IMG/VR virus record: IMGVR_UViG_3300049001_000044
Coordinates: 62,001 to 126,000 of that record
Length of the DNA stretch: 64,000 nucleotides
Reading direction: 5' to 3' (one strand)
Below are positions 6,798 through 58,345 of the stretch, piece after piece. The position numbers and the translations under genes were made by a program. Below the pieces are notes generated by a model. It was not told where the DNA came from, did no database searches, and was given only the letters and a program-made list of their open reading frames with translations. Numbering within the stretch: the stretch's first letter is position 1; each line of letters begins with the position of its first letter.

Positions 6798-7601
6798 TTA
6801 GTTCCTCGTAAAGTTTTCTTCAAGTGCCATCACCAGCTTTTGCATGTCGCAAGCGTAGAAGCCGCAGGAGTTCAAGGTGTTGATCTCCACTACCTTCAGA
6901 CCTTCGCTCGTGTCTGCAACGTCAATGACGAACGCTTCATGCGGTTGCCATTCAGCGATTCTCTCTTCAGCATACTTCTGGAAGATGCTATCAGCAGGCA
7001 GCGATTGGTAGATTACAGTGTGGCCCAGTTTGTAAGTAGAGCTCGTCACTACCTTGCCCTTGACAACCCAGAAGCGGTGCTCGGAGTAGATCTTCTTTGG
7101 CTTGCAGAGCTGGATGAGGGTGTGCTTGTTTAGCGAATCACCGTAGTCTTCTTCCAACACGCACACCTTACGTTTCCAGGTGTAGAACTCGTCTCGCTCG
7201 AACACCTTACCAGCGAAGGATTTGGAATCGTGGATGGGACGAATGAACATCAGCTCATCGTCAAAATTCGCATCACCGAATTCACAAACTACCGCGTCAT
7301 AGTTCAGCATGTGGTTGCCCCACTTTGCCAACTGAATGGTGAAGTCGAACGGCTCCAGATCGAACACTCCTGGATACCAACCTTCCTTCTTCGCAGTGTG
7401 TCGCATCGAGTAGCTACCCATGCAGATCACATTGTCGTAGCCATCAATAGGGCACTGCGAATGGAACGGTGGGGTGATCTCACCGATGAAGGGGATGATC
7501 TTGTGGATGGAGTGCGGGATGTTGAATTTCTCCAGCGTCTCCAACAGCACGTTGTAGGCGTCCTCGTTGAAGAGATTATTTTGCAATACCCAATGCATCA
7601 C
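6798..7601 (-). CDS. ATP-grasp domain protein (R2K/DUF4343-like)
   Basis: FIRP..KSFAG, EHRFWVV, FVIDVA, VVEINT motifs. Confidence 0.75.
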   Translation of the reverse strand: MMHWVLQNNLFNEDAYNVLLETLEKFNIPHSIHKIIPFIGEITPPFHSQCPIDGYDNVICMGSYSMRHTAKKEGWYPGVFDLEPFDFTIQLAKWGNHMLNYDAVVCEFGDANFDDELMFIRPIHDSKSFAGKVFERDEFYTWKRKVCVLEEDYGDSLNKHTLIQLCKPKKIYSEHRFWVVKGKVVTSSTYKLGHTVIYQSLPADSIFQKYAEERIAEWQPHEAFVIDVADTSEGLKVVEINTLNSCGFYACDMQKLVMALEENFTRN

Positions 7602-51340: not shown

Positions 51341-52416
51341 TCAAGGTAGTACTTTCGCAGAAGATTGGTTTTGAACTCGACGTACTGCTCATCCAGTTCA
51401 GGGGTGCGTTCCTGAAGATGAGAGTTCGCCACTGCATCGTCGATCACATTGAAGAGAGTAGTGAGGTAGTTGGTTGCGTCCTCGAGAGTGCGCTTACCCT
51501 CCTTCACCTCTTTCAAGTAATCAGCGTTGGCGCAAGGGAAGACCAGCTTACCCGTGGTCGTCAGCTCCAGCACCTGCTCAGTGATTCGGATGGCGTGAGA
51601 GAGAGCTTTCCAATCTACGCCTTCGCCATCGTACTTCTTAACGCGATCGCCATATTGCGCGAGCGATGCTTTAAGCGACTTAAGCATTGTACTAAATGCG
51701 GCCGTCAGAGGAAACTGCTTTCCGCATACTTCGATCGCTGGCGCCATCTGAGTTCCACCGGCACCATTCAGGATTTCGCACTCTTTCACATGCGGCATCT
51801 TGACCAGCTCTGCGATGAGGGCAGGCGAATCCTTTAGGATCAGCTTGTTGATTGCCTGCTCGTTCGTCTTCATGATTGCAAGACTTTGGATGTAGCCCTC
51901 GACAGTCTCAACCACGTTCTTCATCGAGGTGTAGCGCTCAGTCTTCAGACCATAGTTGCGCGATTGGCTCACTGCGTAGCCCACCATCTTCTGGACGTTG
52001 CGAGTCAGGAAGCGGCCGACCAGTTCGTCCATCCACTCGAAGACGAAGATGTGATCGTCGGTGATTAGCTTGTCTGCCGCCAATTGCTGCACAGGCATGC
52101 CCTCGAACCACACTTTCTCTTGCAGCACAGCAAAGGCGATTTCCAGCGCGTAGGTTTGGCCAGCGATGAAGTCATTGAGGAAGACTTGCAGAGGGATGTA
52201 CTCGTACTCTGCTTCTCCTACCGACATTTTCTCACCATCCTTCTTACCCTCAGGCAGAACCTTACGATTGGTGACTTGCTTGTTCAGCAGAAGGTCGGCC
52301 AGCGAAGGCAGGCAAACCAGCTTGAAGTCAAGATCCGAATTTGGACCGTTGGTGCCGTACAGGTGCGAACCAAAAGGCACCATGAACAGCGCAGTTTCTA
52401 CTTTTACTTTCATCAC
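51337..52416 (-). CDS. Pol-beta-superfamily nucleotidyltransferase (RlaP-like)
   Basis: FGSHLYGT....SDLD; DWKALSHAIR. Confidence 0.75.
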   Translation of the reverse strand: MMKVKVETALFMVPFGSHLYGTNGPNSDLDFKLVCLPSLADLLLNKQVTNRKVLPEGKKDGEKMSVGEAEYEYIPLQVFLNDFIAGQTYALEIAFAVLQEKVWFEGMPVQQLAADKLITDDHIFVFEWMDELVGRFLTRNVQKMVGYAVSQSRNYGLKTERYTSMKNVVETVEGYIQSLAIMKTNEQAINKLILKDSPALIAELVKMPHVKECEILNGAGGTQMAPAIEVCGKQFPLTAAFSTMLKSLKASLAQYGDRVKKYDGEGVDWKALSHAIRITEQVLELTTTGKLVFPCANADYLKEVKEGKRTLEDATNYLTTLFNVIDDAVANSHLQERTPELDEQYVEFKTNLLRKYYLD

Positions 52417-52871: not shown

Positions 52872-53356
52872 TACTCTTCTCCTAAGATCATTTTGATTGC
52901 CTTGAGCGTGGTGCCAGTAGCGGTGGAGAGCTCATCCCGCAGCATCTGAATTGCGTCAGGATTTTTCTCCCACTCGCTGCCGAATGCGTCCTTTAGCACT
53001 GCGATGATATGGTTTTTCTCTAGCACTGTGGCATTGATGACGGGTTCAGGCAGGGCGGCTTTGACTTCCGCGTTCTTCACCTTCTTCGCATCCAGTTTTT
53101 CCAGGTGCTCTTCGTATCCTTCAAGAGCTTCCACCTCTTCGTCAGAGATGGGTTCCCAATCTCTGATCTTTCCGCAGTCCATACAGATGTAGACGTGAGT
53201 CTCATCTCCACCCAGAATTCCAACATAGGGGAGGTAACCCTGAGTCTCAAAATTTTTGAGGTGAGAGAACCGCACATTGGTTACGTCGTTGTGCTTGACG
53301 TAAATCTCCATCAGTCGCGTGCATTCACACATCATCGGCCTTTCAAAATACTGCAA
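52871..53356 (-). CDS. hypothetical protein
   Basis: GYLP..GGD....CMDCG. Confidence 0.6.
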   Translation of the reverse strand: MQYFERPMMCECTRLMEIYVKHNDVTNVRFSHLKNFETQGYLPYVGILGGDETHVYICMDCGKIRDWEPISDEEVEALEGYEEHLEKLDAKKVKNAEVKAALPEPVINATVLEKNHIIAVLKDAFGSEWEKNPDAIQMLRDELSTATGTTLKAIKMILGEE

Positions 53357-54449
53357 TCAATCGTTTGATACGAGCCTTACGCTCTTTGTTCATGGCCACG
53401 CCGATGGCCGGGCCTTCCAGGTGCGTGTAGGGTTCGCTCGTTACTCGACGAACCTCTTGCAGCATTTCCTTCAATTCGTCAGGCCATACCGCAGTCACGT
53501 GGCCGGAATTGTTCAGCACTTCGACAGCTAAGATCACGTCCTTGATGAGCGTGTCATCTTGCCATGCTTTCGTCGTCTTGAACAGTTCGAAGATGGCTTC
53601 GACTTCCAGATCACCCATCCTGTCGATGCGCTGAACAGCTTGATGGATTTGGGTGACGTGGGTGGGCAGAGCATGCACACGACCAGGCAGATCATTCTTC
53701 GCAGTCAACGCGACGAAGTAAGCGAACTGAATCTCGTCCCTGACATAGCGAAGAGTCCTTGCCAGCTTGTCCATCTTGGAGATGACTCGCACGGCTTCAT
53801 GCTGATTGCCCCACACCTCTTTGAAGAACTTGACCCTATTGAAGACGCCAAAGCTGTGCAAGACGTGGAACATCAAGTTAGCCCTGCCGTCTTCAACTGC
53901 TTTGCTGATCTCCAGCCAGTAGCGTTCGTAGGGGATGTGGTCAAGTTCACCCGACTCAACCACGCTGATCGCCAGCTTTTGGGTCTCCTCTGCAATGGAG
54001 AAGTCCTCATAGCGCGCAGCAAATCGTGCGAGGCGAACAACACGCAGAGGGTCTTCAGCAAAAGCTGGGGACACATGCCTCAGCACCTTGTTCTTCAGAT
54101 CATCCAAACCACCGAAGTAGTCGATGATGTTGCCATGAACGCTATCCTTTGCGAGGGCGTTGATGGTGAGGTCACGGCGAGAGAGGTCTTCTTCCAACGT
54201 CACGTCGGTACCGAAGTCGCAGGAGAAACCGTGATAGCCAACACCCGTCTTTCGTTCACGGCGCGCCATTGCAATCTGACTACCATCTGCAGGGTCGATG
54301 AAGACGGGGAAGTCAGCACCGACCGGATCACCGAAGCTTGCTTGCAGTTGTTCGAACGTGCAGCCAACAGCTACGTAATCCAAATCATTTGTTGGTCGGC
54401 CCAACAGCTCATCACGAACTGCACCTCCAACCAAATAGACTTTCTTCAT
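53343..54449 (-). CDS. cca: tRNA nucleotidyltransferase (CCA-adding enzyme, class II)
   Basis: YLVGGAVRD.LLG..DLD; DLSRRDLTINA; EDPLRV.R.ARF. Confidence 0.92.
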   Translation of the reverse strand: MKKVYLVGGAVRDELLGRPTNDLDYVAVGCTFEQLQASFGDPVGADFPVFIDPADGSQIAMARRERKTGVGYHGFSCDFGTDVTLEEDLSRRDLTINALAKDSVHGNIIDYFGGLDDLKNKVLRHVSPAFAEDPLRVVRLARFAARYEDFSIAEETQKLAISVVESGELDHIPYERYWLEISKAVEDGRANLMFHVLHSFGVFNRVKFFKEVWGNQHEAVRVISKMDKLARTLRYVRDEIQFAYFVALTAKNDLPGRVHALPTHVTQIHQAVQRIDRMGDLEVEAIFELFKTTKAWQDDTLIKDVILAVEVLNNSGHVTAVWPDELKEMLQEVRRVTSEPYTHLEGPAIGVAMNKERKARIKRLIAVF

Positions 54450-54694
54450 CAATCCTCCTCGATGGTTGTTCCAAAGAAATGGCAAACGCTGCCCTTTACC
54501 TTCTTGCCCTTTGGGTTAACTGCTTTGAATGACGTGCCAAGAGCCCAAAATTGTGGAGGTCCACAACGAATGTCCATAGCACCGTCATTCACTTCAACGT
54601 GGGTGTAGCCATTCTTCTCAAGGAGGTCTTGATCAGCTTGACTTTGACACCCAACGAGAAGCAAGGCCACCGTTACGATGGCCAGGTATTTCAC
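54449..54694 (-). CDS. putative lipoprotein
   Basis: LLVGC lipobox. Confidence 0.7.
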   Translation of the reverse strand: MKYLAIVTVALLLVGCQSQADQDLLEKNGYTHVEVNDGAMDIRCGPPQFWALGTSFKAVNPKGKKVKGSVCHFFGTTIEED

Positions 54695-55340: not shown

Positions 55341-55637
55341 TCAGATAGGGGTGCGCAGGTAGCGCAATACCTTCGTCTTCTTGTAGGCAACCCGCCGCTC
55401 AATCAGCTCTTCGCTGAGAGGGCTATCCTCTGTCTCCTTCAGCATCTCAACCAACGCCAGTGCATCGGCGGTTTCCAGATTCAGGAGCTCGAAGTTAGTG
55501 CCTGCGTCAGGGTCGCCAGGGTTGAAGCTGTTGATGCCAAACCTTCGAATCTTGCTGATGATTTGGATGATCTCGGCACACTCCTCTTGCAGAATGCCCA
55601 GCAATTCCATTTGGTATGGGGTGGGTTCTTTTATCAT
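55341..55637 (-). CDS. MazG-like NTP pyrophosphohydrolase
   Basis: LQEECAEIIQ.ISK..R...ETAD. Confidence 0.75.
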   Translation of the reverse strand: MIKEPTPYQMELLGILQEECAEIIQIISKIRRFGINSFNPGDPDAGTNFELLNLETADALALVEMLKETEDSPLSEELIERRVAYKKTKVLRYLRTPI

Positions 55638-55856
55638 TTAGTCGGTCTCAAATTCTGCGTCTGCGCGGCAGACAGTTTGGATTATGCTGTTTACCTGACG
55701 ACCCATTGCGTAGCCATCAGTGAACGCCTCTGCATCGTCAGTGTTGCTGCCCATGTACATGACGAGTACTTCGCCATCTACTTCGACAGTGGTGTAGAAG
55801 TCCCCATAGAACTCCTCATCTTCCGGTTGGAAGTGCTTTACGATTTCAATCTTCAT
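55638..55856 (-). CDS. hypothetical protein
   Basis: ORF. Confidence 0.55.
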   Translation of the reverse strand: MKIEIVKHFQPEDEEFYGDFYTTVEVDGEVLVMYMGSNTDDAEAFTDGYAMGRQVNSIIQTVCRADAEFETD

Positions 55857-56143
55857 AGTCCTACTTTATCAAGTGCGCCCCAGTATTCTTCAAGAGGAAT
55901 CCACAGATCGTCGTCATCGGCTTCCCAGCCGTCGAAGAGAATCTTCAATGTGCATCCTTCTACTTCTTTCTCACCGTTGTAGCCGCATGTGGTACCTTCT
56001 TCGTCGTCCCACACGTACTCAACTTGGATCTGTCGTGGGTCAAAGCCTTCATGAAAGCCTTGAACCTTTTTCAACCAGATGATGTCTTCACCGTGAGCAG
56101 GCTTGCTCTCTGCGACGGTGTGGAATGTGAATGTGACGCTCAT
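55853..56143 (-). CDS. hypothetical protein
   Basis: ORF. Confidence 0.6.
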   Translation of the reverse strand: MSVTFTFHTVAESKPAHGEDIIWLKKVQGFHEGFDPRQIQVEYVWDDEEGTTCGYNGEKEVEGCTLKILFDGWEADDDDLWIPLEEYWGALDKVGL

Positions 56144-56334
56144 ATGTATCCTCTTGGGTTACGAACCATCTCCATGATCTGGAGTTGAAGTTCAGTCGGT
56201 GTAGGTGGAGGTGGGGTTGTGGTGTCTATGTAGAAGACCCTTCGCTCACCTCTCACTATCTTGAATATGGGAACGTATGGGCAGTAGAAGTTAGCGACAT
56301 CCATTTCTGTCTGTCCCTTGTAACCAGTAATCAT
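56140..56334 (-). CDS. 64-aa protein combining capsid (gp23)-like and portal (gp20)-like motifs
   Basis: GYKG..EMD...YCPYVP then ERRVFYIDT; translationally coupled on both sides. Confidence 0.6.
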   Translation of the reverse strand: MITGYKGQTEMDVANFYCPYVPIFKIVRGERRVFYIDTTTPPPPTPTELQLQIMEMVRNPRGYI

Positions 56335-56783
56335 TCTAGTCGTCCAATAGTTAGGTGGAAGAAGCGCTTGTTGGTGGGGAGGCCATACGATGAGCGGATA
56401 TCCGCCAACTCATCGCATCGAACGTTCAACCACCAATGGTCCGCGTTGGAGTAGATTTGGTGGGTGTAATCAATCTTGACTTTCCTACCATCATCCCATC
56501 CCCATCGTTCAGGGTTAGGGAGTGTCTCGCCTCGTATAACGGAGACGTGAGCACCCCACTTACTCCGCCAATGGAGAGGGATGTCGAAGCGCTTTTGGAT
56601 CTGCGCTGCGTAGTAACGAGCGATCTCGTCATCTACCTGGAGTAGGAGCCAGTCACCTACGTAGCGAAGGGTGCCAACAACACTGTGCACGTAATCGTCA
56701 CCCTCGCGATCGCGATACGTCGTGACGAGTCTTCCAAAGCTACTTCCTAAGATGAGGGTCCCGTCAGACGTATCTACAATCAT
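56331..56783 (-). CDS. 2H phosphoesterase
   Basis: HVSV and HLTI motifs. Confidence 0.75.
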   Translation of the reverse strand: MIVDTSDGTLILGSSFGRLVTTYRDREGDDYVHSVVGTLRYVGDWLLLQVDDEIARYYAAQIQKRFDIPLHWRSKWGAHVSVIRGETLPNPERWGWDDGRKVKIDYTHQIYSNADHWWLNVRCDELADIRSSYGLPTNKRFFHLTIGRLE

Positions 56784-57316
56784 GTCGAGATGACCTCCGA
56801 ATCGGTGCCTACGGAAGGCGAGAAGGTTCCTGCTGCGATGATCGCGTTCTTGACGATCGTTTCGGCAGCCTCGTAGGTGCGAGGAGTACCATTCAGCAGA
56901 TTAGTGAAGACGCTACCCATTGCGTACTCAGCACCGCTACCAACTGCAGCGAAGCCACGAGTCGAGCGAAGGACGGAGAAGTCCGCTTGTAGTTCCCACA
57001 GTTGACCCTTCACACCGATCAGTGCATTGCCGCCCTTGTCGTGGTCGAAGCTCTTCAGCGCGTCCTTGATGTCAGGGATCAGCACAGTGATTAGCCAACG
57101 ATAGATCTGTTTTGGATCTTCAGGAACGACTGGATCCGGTAGCCCATGCTCCAGCACTTGGCCAAAGCGATAGCTTGAGGTAAAGCCGAAGATGACGCCG
57201 TTCTTGTCAAACACCTTGGGTTGAGTGTGAACGACTTTGTTGTTCCAGCCAGTTCCTTGGATGTCGCCACCCATCAGAACCTTGCCATTGTGTTCGATGC
57301 CTACGATGCAGGTCAT
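56780..57316 (-). CDS. proteasome/HslV-like Ntn hydrolase
   Basis: N-terminal Thr (MTCIVG), K33-like PKVF, AVGSGAEYAMG. Confidence 0.8.
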   Translation of the reverse strand: MTCIVGIEHNGKVLMGGDIQGTGWNNKVVHTQPKVFDKNGVIFGFTSSYRFGQVLEHGLPDPVVPEDPKQIYRWLITVLIPDIKDALKSFDHDKGGNALIGVKGQLWELQADFSVLRSTRGFAAVGSGAEYAMGSVFTNLLNGTPRTYEAAETIVKNAIIAAGTFSPSVGTDSEVIST

Positions 57317-57769: not shown

Positions 57770-58345
57770 TCATAGGACTCCTGTTGAGATGAGATGCAGT
57801 TGTAAGACGATCACCAATGCGTAGGCAATCGCGTGGCTCTTTTTGAAGCTGTACCCTTGCTCGTCCTTCGCATACAGAGTGCGACGGCATACGTCACGTT
57901 GGGCGTTGTAGAGCTTGAGGAATTGCTTCTTACCCGGTCGAATCAGTGCGAGGACGTCTGCAAGTTCTTCCACACTTCGTGGCTTCACAAAGTTGAGGAC
58001 GTCACCATGATTCGACAACTGAAACAGTTTCTTCTGTTCAGTTGGAACCAGAAGTAGCCCCCAGTCGGGTTCGATCTTCAACAGCTCTTCAATCTCTTCA
58101 CGAGAAGAGAAGTGATCGTACACACCCAAGTGCAGCATGTCCACTTTGAAGTAGCCCAGCTTTTCAGCTGCCTCGTAAGGGATGGCTGCGAGCTGTGTGA
58201 CAGGGTCGACAGGGATTTTCTGAGGATAGACACCGCATGGGTGAGGAGCTAGGTAACCGTTCTTCACTAAGCTGGCACGAGGCCAAGGAAAGACAGAGTT
58301 GGGTTTGAAGCTCGTCGGGAAGTCGATGTCAATATCCGCGTTCAT
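57770..58345 (-). CDS. miniature DNA polymerase III alpha (DnaE) catalytic-core protein
   Basis: DIDIDF, HPCGVY, KVDML, ALIRPG, YSFKKSHAIAYA. Confidence 0.8.
   Translation of the reverse strand: MNADIDIDFPTSFKPNSVFPWPRASLVKNGYLAPHPCGVYPQKIPVDPVTQLAAIPYEAAEKLGYFKVDMLHLGVYDHFSSREEIEELLKIEPDWGLLLVPTEQKKLFQLSNHGDVLNFVKPRSVEELADVLALIRPGKKQFLKLYNAQRDVCRRTLYAKDEQGYSFKKSHAIAYALVIVLQLHLISTGVL

Follow-up and report, generated by a model that had tools for sequence, protein, structure and literature searches.

Introduction

Several host defences read short peptide determinants made by phages, such as the Gol peptide of T4 gp23, which is read by Lit, and Stp, which is read by PrrC. Gol is a trigger within the capsid protein, with no separate gene, and occupies about residues 93-122 of gp23. 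Peptide determinants of abortive infection are also covered in a review of the field (PMC13728456), and the same review counts capsid and portal proteins among the main cues for bacterial immunity, as in the Avs, CapRel, SpbK and CBASS systems (PMC13728456).

The two head proteins that matter here have been studied closely in T4. In the portal protein gp20, the stem helix alpha5 spans residues 255-278 and the clip domain covers residues 279-358 (PMC4493910). The clip protrudes from the capsid as the docking site of the terminase gp17 and, at a later stage, of the neck, and it builds an inter-subunit three-stranded sheet (PMC4493910). Residues N291, M292, R295 and K296 at the clip tip contact the large terminase, and a synthetic 24-aa peptide covering gp20 288-311 binds gp17 and inhibits packaging in vitro (PMC4493910). 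In the capsid protein gp23, A455 is a buried residue in the beta-sheet of the P-domain, and the single substitution A455V is enough to bypass the co-chaperonin gp31 (PMC9546572).

The locus studied here encodes a microprotein in which pieces of both head proteins are combined. The original prediction described a 64-aa ORF, translationally coupled within a non-structural operon, whose first half matches the C-terminal motif of gp23 and whose second half matches gp20 in gap-free register, and it proposed a dual-epitope decoy of the sensors that detect capsid and portal. We examined the gene, the origin of its parts, its homologues and its neighbourhood, and then weighed what the peptide may do.

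Results

The microprotein gene and its source phage

The window analysed, 64,000 nucleotides in all, comprises bases 62,001-126,000 of a 343,229-bp soil metagenomic contig (JGI sample 3300049001, IMG/VR UViG_3300049001_000044). Judged by the protein of a polymerase fragment, it comes from one of the jumbo phages that are related to Ralstonia phage RsoM2USA and Xanthomonas phages Xoo-sp13 and XacN1, and the Rak2-like group stands farther off. The microprotein gene (P0001, 64 aa) lies on the minus strand at 56140..56334, as found from the ORF listing and the sequence, and runs from an ATG start to a PRGYI tail; the ORF that had been predicted is real, and its quoted sequence is correct once this tail is added. 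On each side the gene shares an ATGA with its neighbour: at 56331-56334 its ATG runs into the stop codon of the upstream 150-aa gene (minus strand, 56331..56783), and at 56140-56143 its TGA runs into the ATG start of the downstream 96-aa gene (minus strand, 55853..56143). The downstream gene encodes an acidic protein without PHROG or Pfam match, and its ribosome-binding site, AAGAGGA (minus strand, 56149..56155), is located within the PRGYI-tail codons of the microprotein gene.

The JGI annotation calls the microprotein gene, with a weak Gp23 Pfam match, while a second gene caller passed over the ORF. An independent assembly of the source run showed 0 differences from the 2.1-kb region at a word depth of ~20x (this is the same sample, not independent biology), so the chimera is not a mis-join, and an assembly artefact is ruled out as its origin. 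Among the sequencing runs searched, in a search that was not RNA-specific, only the source run contains the region. A scan for promoters and terminators gave the same counts as in shuffled sequence. The phage, a soil jumbo phage of ~343 kb, is a relative of RsoM2USA, Xoo-sp13 and XacN1, and the microprotein ORF is one of its real accessory genes.

The product of the 150-aa upstream gene is 2H-phosphoesterase-like (phrog_12204, E 5e-25), with 21.8 bits against PF22547 2H-SAK, below the cut-off of 27, so that the 2H neighbour named in the prediction stands only roughly, while the MazG-like gene that it also named is indeed present, two genes downstream of the microprotein gene. JGI missed the 150-aa gene and annotated a 32-aa piece and an opposite-strand ORF instead; the Logan gene caller calls it. 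Around these genes we found an HslV-like peptidase (window 56780-57316, phrog_1040), the MazG-like pyrophosphohydrolase (window 55341-55637, phrog_4856, E 3e-16), a CCA-adding tRNA nucleotidyltransferase (window 53343-54485) and an RlaP-like protein (window 51346-52389), which make up a cluster of RNA-repair or host-takeover type.

Two further features of this part of the genome were observed. The DNA polymerase III alpha-like gene is split into a 191-aa finger fragment (window 57770-58345) and a 170-aa PF07733 fragment outside the window (record ~128.2-128.7 kb). Unrelated genes occupy the ~8 kb that separate the two, and the same arrangement is seen in related contigs. A gene of the Acb1 Pfam family (anti-CBASS 2H phosphodiesterase) lies outside the window, ~15 kb away (L210:3762-4247, record ~133.9-134.4 kb), near genes for Thg1-like protein, dCMP deaminase, glutaredoxin and ribonucleotide reductase.

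The capsid-derived and portal-derived parts

Residues 1-23 (minus strand, 56266..56334) are a copy of the major-capsid motif GYKG..E.D...FYCPYVP, which is supported by BLASTP, Pfam, PHROG and a clade HMM. In BLASTP against T4 proteins from GenBank, residues 4-23 align with gp23 437-456 (11 of 20 identical, pairwise E 3e-6), and the identity rises to 15-16 of 23 when related phages rather than T4 are compared. Pfam Gp23 (PF07068) is matched with 27.3 bits against a cut-off of 24.4, though only over profile positions 303-325 of 376, and PHROG 138 (major head protein) is matched with E 2e-5. We also built clade HMMs of the two head proteins from related jumbo phages (231 capsid and 166 portal sequences); the capsid model gave the microprotein 30.9 bits, while the best of 20,000 shuffles reached 9.4. 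The first half is thus the gp23 C-terminal motif that had been predicted. The position of T4 A455 falls at the end of this piece. It comes from another part of gp23 than the Gol region sensed by Lit. A full-length capsid protein of the HK97 fold has about 400-520 aa and is encoded in the head module; the microprotein has 64 aa, and its AlphaFold2 model has no such fold.

In the portal-derived part, residues 21-59 align with T4 gp20 271-310 in BLASTP (14 of 40 identical, pairwise E 6e-6), with one 1-residue gap (RG-ERR versus RAPDRR) and none after it; the predicted gp20 match therefore stands, and the gap-free register holds only beyond that position. Within this part, residues 23-38 (minus strand, 56221..56268) form the portal-derived strand IFKIVRG-ERRVFYIDT, corresponding to T4 gp20 273-289, where stem helix alpha5 ends and the clip starts, by BLASTP, Pfam, PHROG and clade HMM, and identical at 13 of 17 positions to the portal of locus L015. 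Residues 38-47 (minus strand, 56194..56223) are a Thr/Pro-rich stretch, TTTPPPPTPT, which in the gp20 alignment stands in place of the portal clip tip (T4 T289-A298). The terminase contacts of the clip tip are not kept, T4 N291, M292, R295 and K296 being replaced by T40, P41, P44 and T45, while residues 37-60 as a whole align with the inhibitory gp20 288-311 peptide.

Library-wide, the portal signal is weaker than the capsid signal. Portal_T4 (PF07230) is the sole Pfam match of the portal half, at a weak E of 0.025 and with 12.3-13.7 bits, which does not reach the curated threshold of 22.9, and phrog_213 (portal, E 0.013) is the sole PHROG match when the portal half is scanned alone. The clade portal HMM gave 15.9 bits against 8.1 for the best of 20,000 shuffles, and it is by this model and its shuffles that the match is significant. 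A tblastn search of GenBank phages with the portal half returned no match, under the low-complexity filter and at that database size. Compared with a full dodecameric portal, which has wing, stem, clip and crown, the microprotein holds ~40 residues from the stem end and the clip start only.

A family of capsid/portal-strand microproteins

A word-seeded search with the single protein found only the protein itself, and peptide patterns in IMG/VR likewise. By contrast, exhaustive HMMER over 1.84 billion representatives gave two small proteins aligned over residues 2-60, and two rounds of profile search extended these to a set of 21 clusters, whose proteins measure 55-98 aa; against a database of 5.8 billion proteins their E-values range from 1e-27 to about 1e-8. 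At the same database size, P0001 itself matches the family profile with E 2e-20. We defined the family by alignment A3, with at least 21 clusters. P0001 has both the N-terminal motif GYKG..D..F[FY]CPY.P and a length within the 55-98 aa of the family. The members come from many independent contigs, several of them 330-350 kb long; P0130 alone is indexed in 53 collection blocks, from which 24 contigs were read.

The capsid motif is present in all 21 members, with 17-40 bits at capsid HMM positions 325-352, and 0 of 3,000 shuffles scored as high. All 21 also match Pfam Gp23, either passing or approaching the model, and hhalign of six other members against capsid proteins gave a probability of 98.5% and E 3e-15. 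The residues that are invariant in the family (G, Y, K, G, D, F, C, P, Y and P) coincide with the capsid-invariant ones. After the motif there is usually Pro-Gly, then a variable linker, and then a C-terminal motif P-T-x-[IL]-Q-x-x-I-M-x-x-V-[RK] (PTEIQ..IM..VRN), which is present in P0001 as PTELQLQIMEMVRN (residues 46-59; minus strand, 56158..56199) and is shared by the whole family in alignment A3, a helix being predicted there by AlphaFold2. In A3, T47 and Q50 are invariant and M54 nearly so; for I53 and V57, invariance was limited to the first 10 members. When this family-wide helix was placed by hhalign, the best position was the cognate portal helix, but with P 0.07, which is not significant, so a portal origin of the helix is only a suggestion.

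The portal strand is found in six of the 21 members (P0001, P0003, P0127, P0132, P0133 and P0136), and a seventh, P0135, has a degenerate form. Its scores in the six (6-21 bits) are above all 3,000 shuffles, at portal HMM positions 288-311 in the five others and 294-315 in P0001. The strand of this subfamily, Y-[KR]-[IV]-x-R-x-x-[ED]-R-[RK]-V-F, is a copy of T4 gp20 ~267-289 and is present in P0001. It precedes the capsid motif in the other five members (e.g. IYKVYREPERRVF) and follows it only in P0001, where portal strand and family helix together resemble the continuous gp20 segment 271-310. The combination of capsid and portal pieces is thus a recurrent architecture, with the order permuted in P0001. 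Since only 6-7 of the 21 members have the portal strand, the core of the family is not a dual epitope but the capsid motif plus the C-terminal helix, that is, a copy of the T4 gp23 437-458 strand followed by a linker and the helix motif.

None of 50,697 GenBank phage genomes yielded a family member, and neither Pfam nor PHROGs has a model for the family. A candidate in Serratia phage 3M was spurious, lying on the opposite strand with an internal stop, and many Gp23 matches of ~89 aa turned out to be C-terminal ends of real capsid genes read from an internal Met, mostly on short contigs. On sequence grounds, these microproteins of 55-98 aa with capsid and portal strands are an undescribed family, absent from isolates and from curated models.

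Neighbourhood and distribution of the family

In L369, a member (36% identical) directly follows the polymerase-finger fragment and precedes the CCA-adding enzyme; the stretch is collinear with the window, and the neighbouring proteins are 29-68% identical. In L391, this polymerase fragment has a member with the portal strand two genes upstream of it. Other members adjoin genes for RNA ligase, guanylate kinase, ribonucleotide reductase, peptide deformylase or NUDIX proteins, and the members are always co-directional with their neighbours and mostly overlap them.

The gene is also missing from close relatives. The closest relative found, L379, whose polymerase fragment is 87% identical, lacks the microprotein gene together with the 96-aa gene: a 470-bp piece corresponding to window ~55861-56328 is absent, which is a two-gene indel with breakpoints at the gene boundaries. 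A family member near the polymerase fragment is likewise absent in ten other relatives. RsoM2USA and Xoo-sp13 are without the gene around the polymerase fragment. No homologue of the 96-aa protein was detected among the neighbours of other family members.

Head genes of the phage and origin of the parts

There is no full capsid or portal gene within the window. To locate the phage's own head genes we used coordinates from the RsoM2USA paper and then the RsoM2USA capsid protein as query. The portal (L293:5107-6774, 555 aa) and the capsid gene (L293:10001-11218, 405 aa) are each about 100 kb from the microprotein gene, which lies at ~118 kb of the record, while the head module lies at ~220-226 kb. 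The microprotein is identical to the phage's own capsid motif at 11 of 24 positions (46%), this motif having an extra residue typical of the RsoM2USA clade, and to its own portal segment at 17 of 40 (43%). At the nucleotide level the identities are 63% and 53%, respectively, and exact runs are found only in FYCPY codons, which are common to many capsid genes. With identities this low for both protein and DNA, two possibilities were rejected: that the microprotein gene was copied recently from the capsid and portal genes of this phage, and that it acts on them as an antisense element. No other head-gene remnants were found in the genes flanking it. At the capsid/portal join, residues 21-23 (minus strand, 56266..56274) read V-P-I, where the parents have V-P-L in the capsid and V-V-I in the portal by alignment, and this stretch may represent microhomology at the junction.

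Other small ORFs with head-gene fragments

Small ORFs with pieces of head genes were also observed elsewhere in related phages. XbC2_260 (L209:16654-17151, phrog_25089; also in L211, L212, L217 and L219) is a 165-aa protein conserved in GAP32/XbC2-like jumbo phages, whose residues 143-168 are 81% identical to the clip segment 324-349 of the portal of the same phage; some homologues are without it. L018 (IMGVR_UViG_3300032285_003046) has a small ORF (6858-7283, minus strand) that lies about 100 nt downstream of the capsid gene in convergent orientation and whose last part is a 48-residue copy of the capsid motif (40.9 bits with the clade HMM, 33.6 bits with Pfam Gp23). Two more small ORFs, L019:16438-16770 and L149:13341-13691, hold short portal (HMM 384-406) or capsid (HMM 161-218) fragments. 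The ORFs of L018, L019 and L149 have the motif F-x-F-x-x-E-E-D-A-x-x-F-x-L-x-W beside the captured fragment.

Maintenance of the gene

Among strain variants of one member, the microprotein gene has diverged by 1.5-2.9% at the nucleotide level, compared with 5.6-6.6% for the adjacent polymerase gene and 7-11% for intergenic sequence, and its lower divergence is significant in two of three variant pairs (Fisher p 0.003-0.007). The pN/pS among close variants of that member is ~0.5, on only 3-6 changes, and the variants of other members are identical or too close for dN/dS. The codon usage of P0001 is poor for the phage, at the 8th percentile of in-frame gene windows, and its GC3 is 0.49 versus 0.62.

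These observations bear on whether the peptide has a role at all. It could be a non-functional scar, in which two head-gene fragments were joined by illegitimate recombination and the frame stayed open by chance; the three-residue junction that fits both parents, the poor codon usage, the ORF being skipped by one gene caller, the absence of the gene from the closest relative, and the other small ORFs with capsid or portal fragments in related contigs would all agree with such an origin. However, the original prediction had itself considered a unique scar, or halves without a match to gp23 and gp20, and what we found is that both halves match significantly and that the homologues form at least 21 clusters, all with conserved motifs, six of which combine capsid and portal strands. 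The gene is coupled by ATGA at both ends and diverges less than its flanks in strain variants, and in L369 a member holds its place in a conserved neighbourhood although the neighbour proteins have diverged to 29-68% identity, over which a 64-codon ORF with its motifs would be unlikely to persist without selection. The family thus largely refutes the scar, which we regard as essentially excluded. It could also be that the ORF is open merely as a spacer which brings ribosomes to the downstream gene by translational coupling, with a peptide that has no role, as might be suggested by the ATGA shared with each neighbour, by the downstream ribosome-binding site within its last codons, and by the joint gain or loss with the 96-aa gene; but what is kept in 21 clusters is the motifs, not a mere open frame, and the downstream genes are unrelated, so a spacer is extremely improbable.

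Discussion

The copied capsid and portal strands are buried or paired in finished structures and are free only in unfolded or unassembled subunits, as follows from the inter-subunit sheet of the T4 clip and from the place of A455 in the P-domain sheet. A capsid piece within a protein of 60 aa cannot hold its native contacts, yet the conserved residues are retained; invariant residues kept in a protein too small for the parental fold suggest that they are read, as peptides, by a binding partner. Given the family alignment, AlphaFold2 returned a mean pLDDT of 59, the only confident part being helix 48-58 (pLDDT 77-81), and the low values elsewhere suggest a peptide that is disordered until bound. 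The reading we prefer is a peptide mimic of unassembled head proteins that competes for a partner of the capsid and portal strands, to which we give a probability of about 45%. The microprotein, largely disordered by itself, would be expressed from an operon of nucleotide-metabolism and RNA-repair genes, a kind usually on before the head genes; it would display strands that capsid and portal normally expose only while unfolded or unassembled, and would compete for a partner that binds such strands.

The candidate partners, in what we consider to be descending order of likelihood, are a host sensor for head proteins, towards which the peptide would be an antagonist or decoy, the machinery of rival T4-type phages for assembly or packaging, and the phage's own folding or assembly machinery. 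The patchy presence, the variable neighbours and the setting among nucleotide-metabolism and RNA-repair genes suggest the signature of an arms race and favour a host sensor or a rival phage as the target. Host sensors for head proteins are common (PMC13728456). By analogy with such sensing, the decoy of the original prediction, directed at capsid and portal sensors together, is one candidate reading among several. It is qualified by the portal strand, which only 6-7 of the 21 members have, and by the capsid piece, which lies outside the Gol region. Against mimicry count the replaced terminase contacts of the clip tip, the lack of the portal strand in most family members, and the report that known portal sensors recognise folds, not short peptides (PMC13728456). 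A more specific version, in which a multi-epitope mimic expressed before the head genes either blinds immunity that senses unassembled capsid or portal or poisons competing T4-type phages, is tentative and rather doubtful. If it were true, the microprotein would be a counter-defence or an inter-phage weapon of an undescribed kind.

Two functions directed at head assembly deserve to be weighed separately. If the peptide were a weapon against competing T4-type phages, its strands would enter the capsomers or the portal clip of the rival, or occupy its terminase, before this slow jumbo phage assembles its own heads, and such a poison would be broad-spectrum since the pieces that were copied rank as the best conserved of the entire T4 superfamily. 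We know of no precedent for a microprotein that poisons rival T4-type phages, and self-poisoning is conceivable, although motifs only 46% and 43% identical to the phage's own versions could spare it. The T4 gp20 288-311 peptide blocks packaging in vitro and the clip strand forms an inter-subunit sheet (PMC4493910), which would suit this function, as would the 270-min latent period of RsoM2USA (PMC8504454); but the terminase-contacting residues of the clip tip have been replaced, and we consider a weapon unlikely. Alternatively, the microprotein might regulate the morphogenesis of the phage's own head, engaging a chaperonin or scaffold in place of the capsid protein, or capping portal monomers, and so timing assembly. 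The capsid piece does include the gp31-bypass position A455 in the P-domain sheet (PMC9546572), and in relatives a gene for a GroES-like co-chaperonin (XbC2_264) is found close to the head genes. However, the gene is far from the head module (record ~118 kb versus ~220-226 kb), its motifs do not follow those of the capsid or portal encoded by the same phage, and its absence from the closest relative and from the polymerase regions of RsoM2USA and Xoo-sp13 indicates that it is dispensable for assembly, which makes such a regulator quite improbable.

Whichever partner the proposed peptide mimic may bind, the family is a clear case of new genes made from pieces of essential genes, with the same two pieces joined in two orders, and it raises the question whether fragments of phage structural proteins antagonise immune sensors, rival phages or the phage's own assembly chaperones. 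With only 55-98 residues, the microproteins are easy to synthesise and assay.

Compared with described systems, the microprotein is like gp23 (PF07068) in that residues 1-23 are the most conserved gp23 motif, and unlike it in that about 25 of 400-520 residues are present, which makes an HK97 fold impossible, and in that the gene lies in an operon for nucleotide metabolism and RNA repair. It is like the stem alpha5/clip of gp20 (PF07230) in that residues 21-59 correspond to 271-310 and residues 37-60 to the inhibitory peptide, and differs by a score below the Pfam threshold, a one-residue deletion in the RAPERR motif and a Thr/Pro stretch in place of the gp17-contact tip. With Gol/Lit and Stp/PrrC it shares the form of a short phage peptide, and a role in defence is here a candidate by analogy. 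XbC2_260 and the L018 ORF are, like the microprotein, small jumbo-phage proteins with a short copy of a head-protein motif; they have other architectures and show no homology to the family beyond the copied motif, and in XbC2_260 the copied portal segment is another one. Finally, T4 alt.-1 and alt.-2, annotated as an old partial duplication of gene alt, are likewise small ORFs from a larger virion-protein gene; they lie beside a single parent gene, and neither a conserved family nor a function has been claimed for them, whereas the microprotein combines two unrelated parents and is conserved across many phages.
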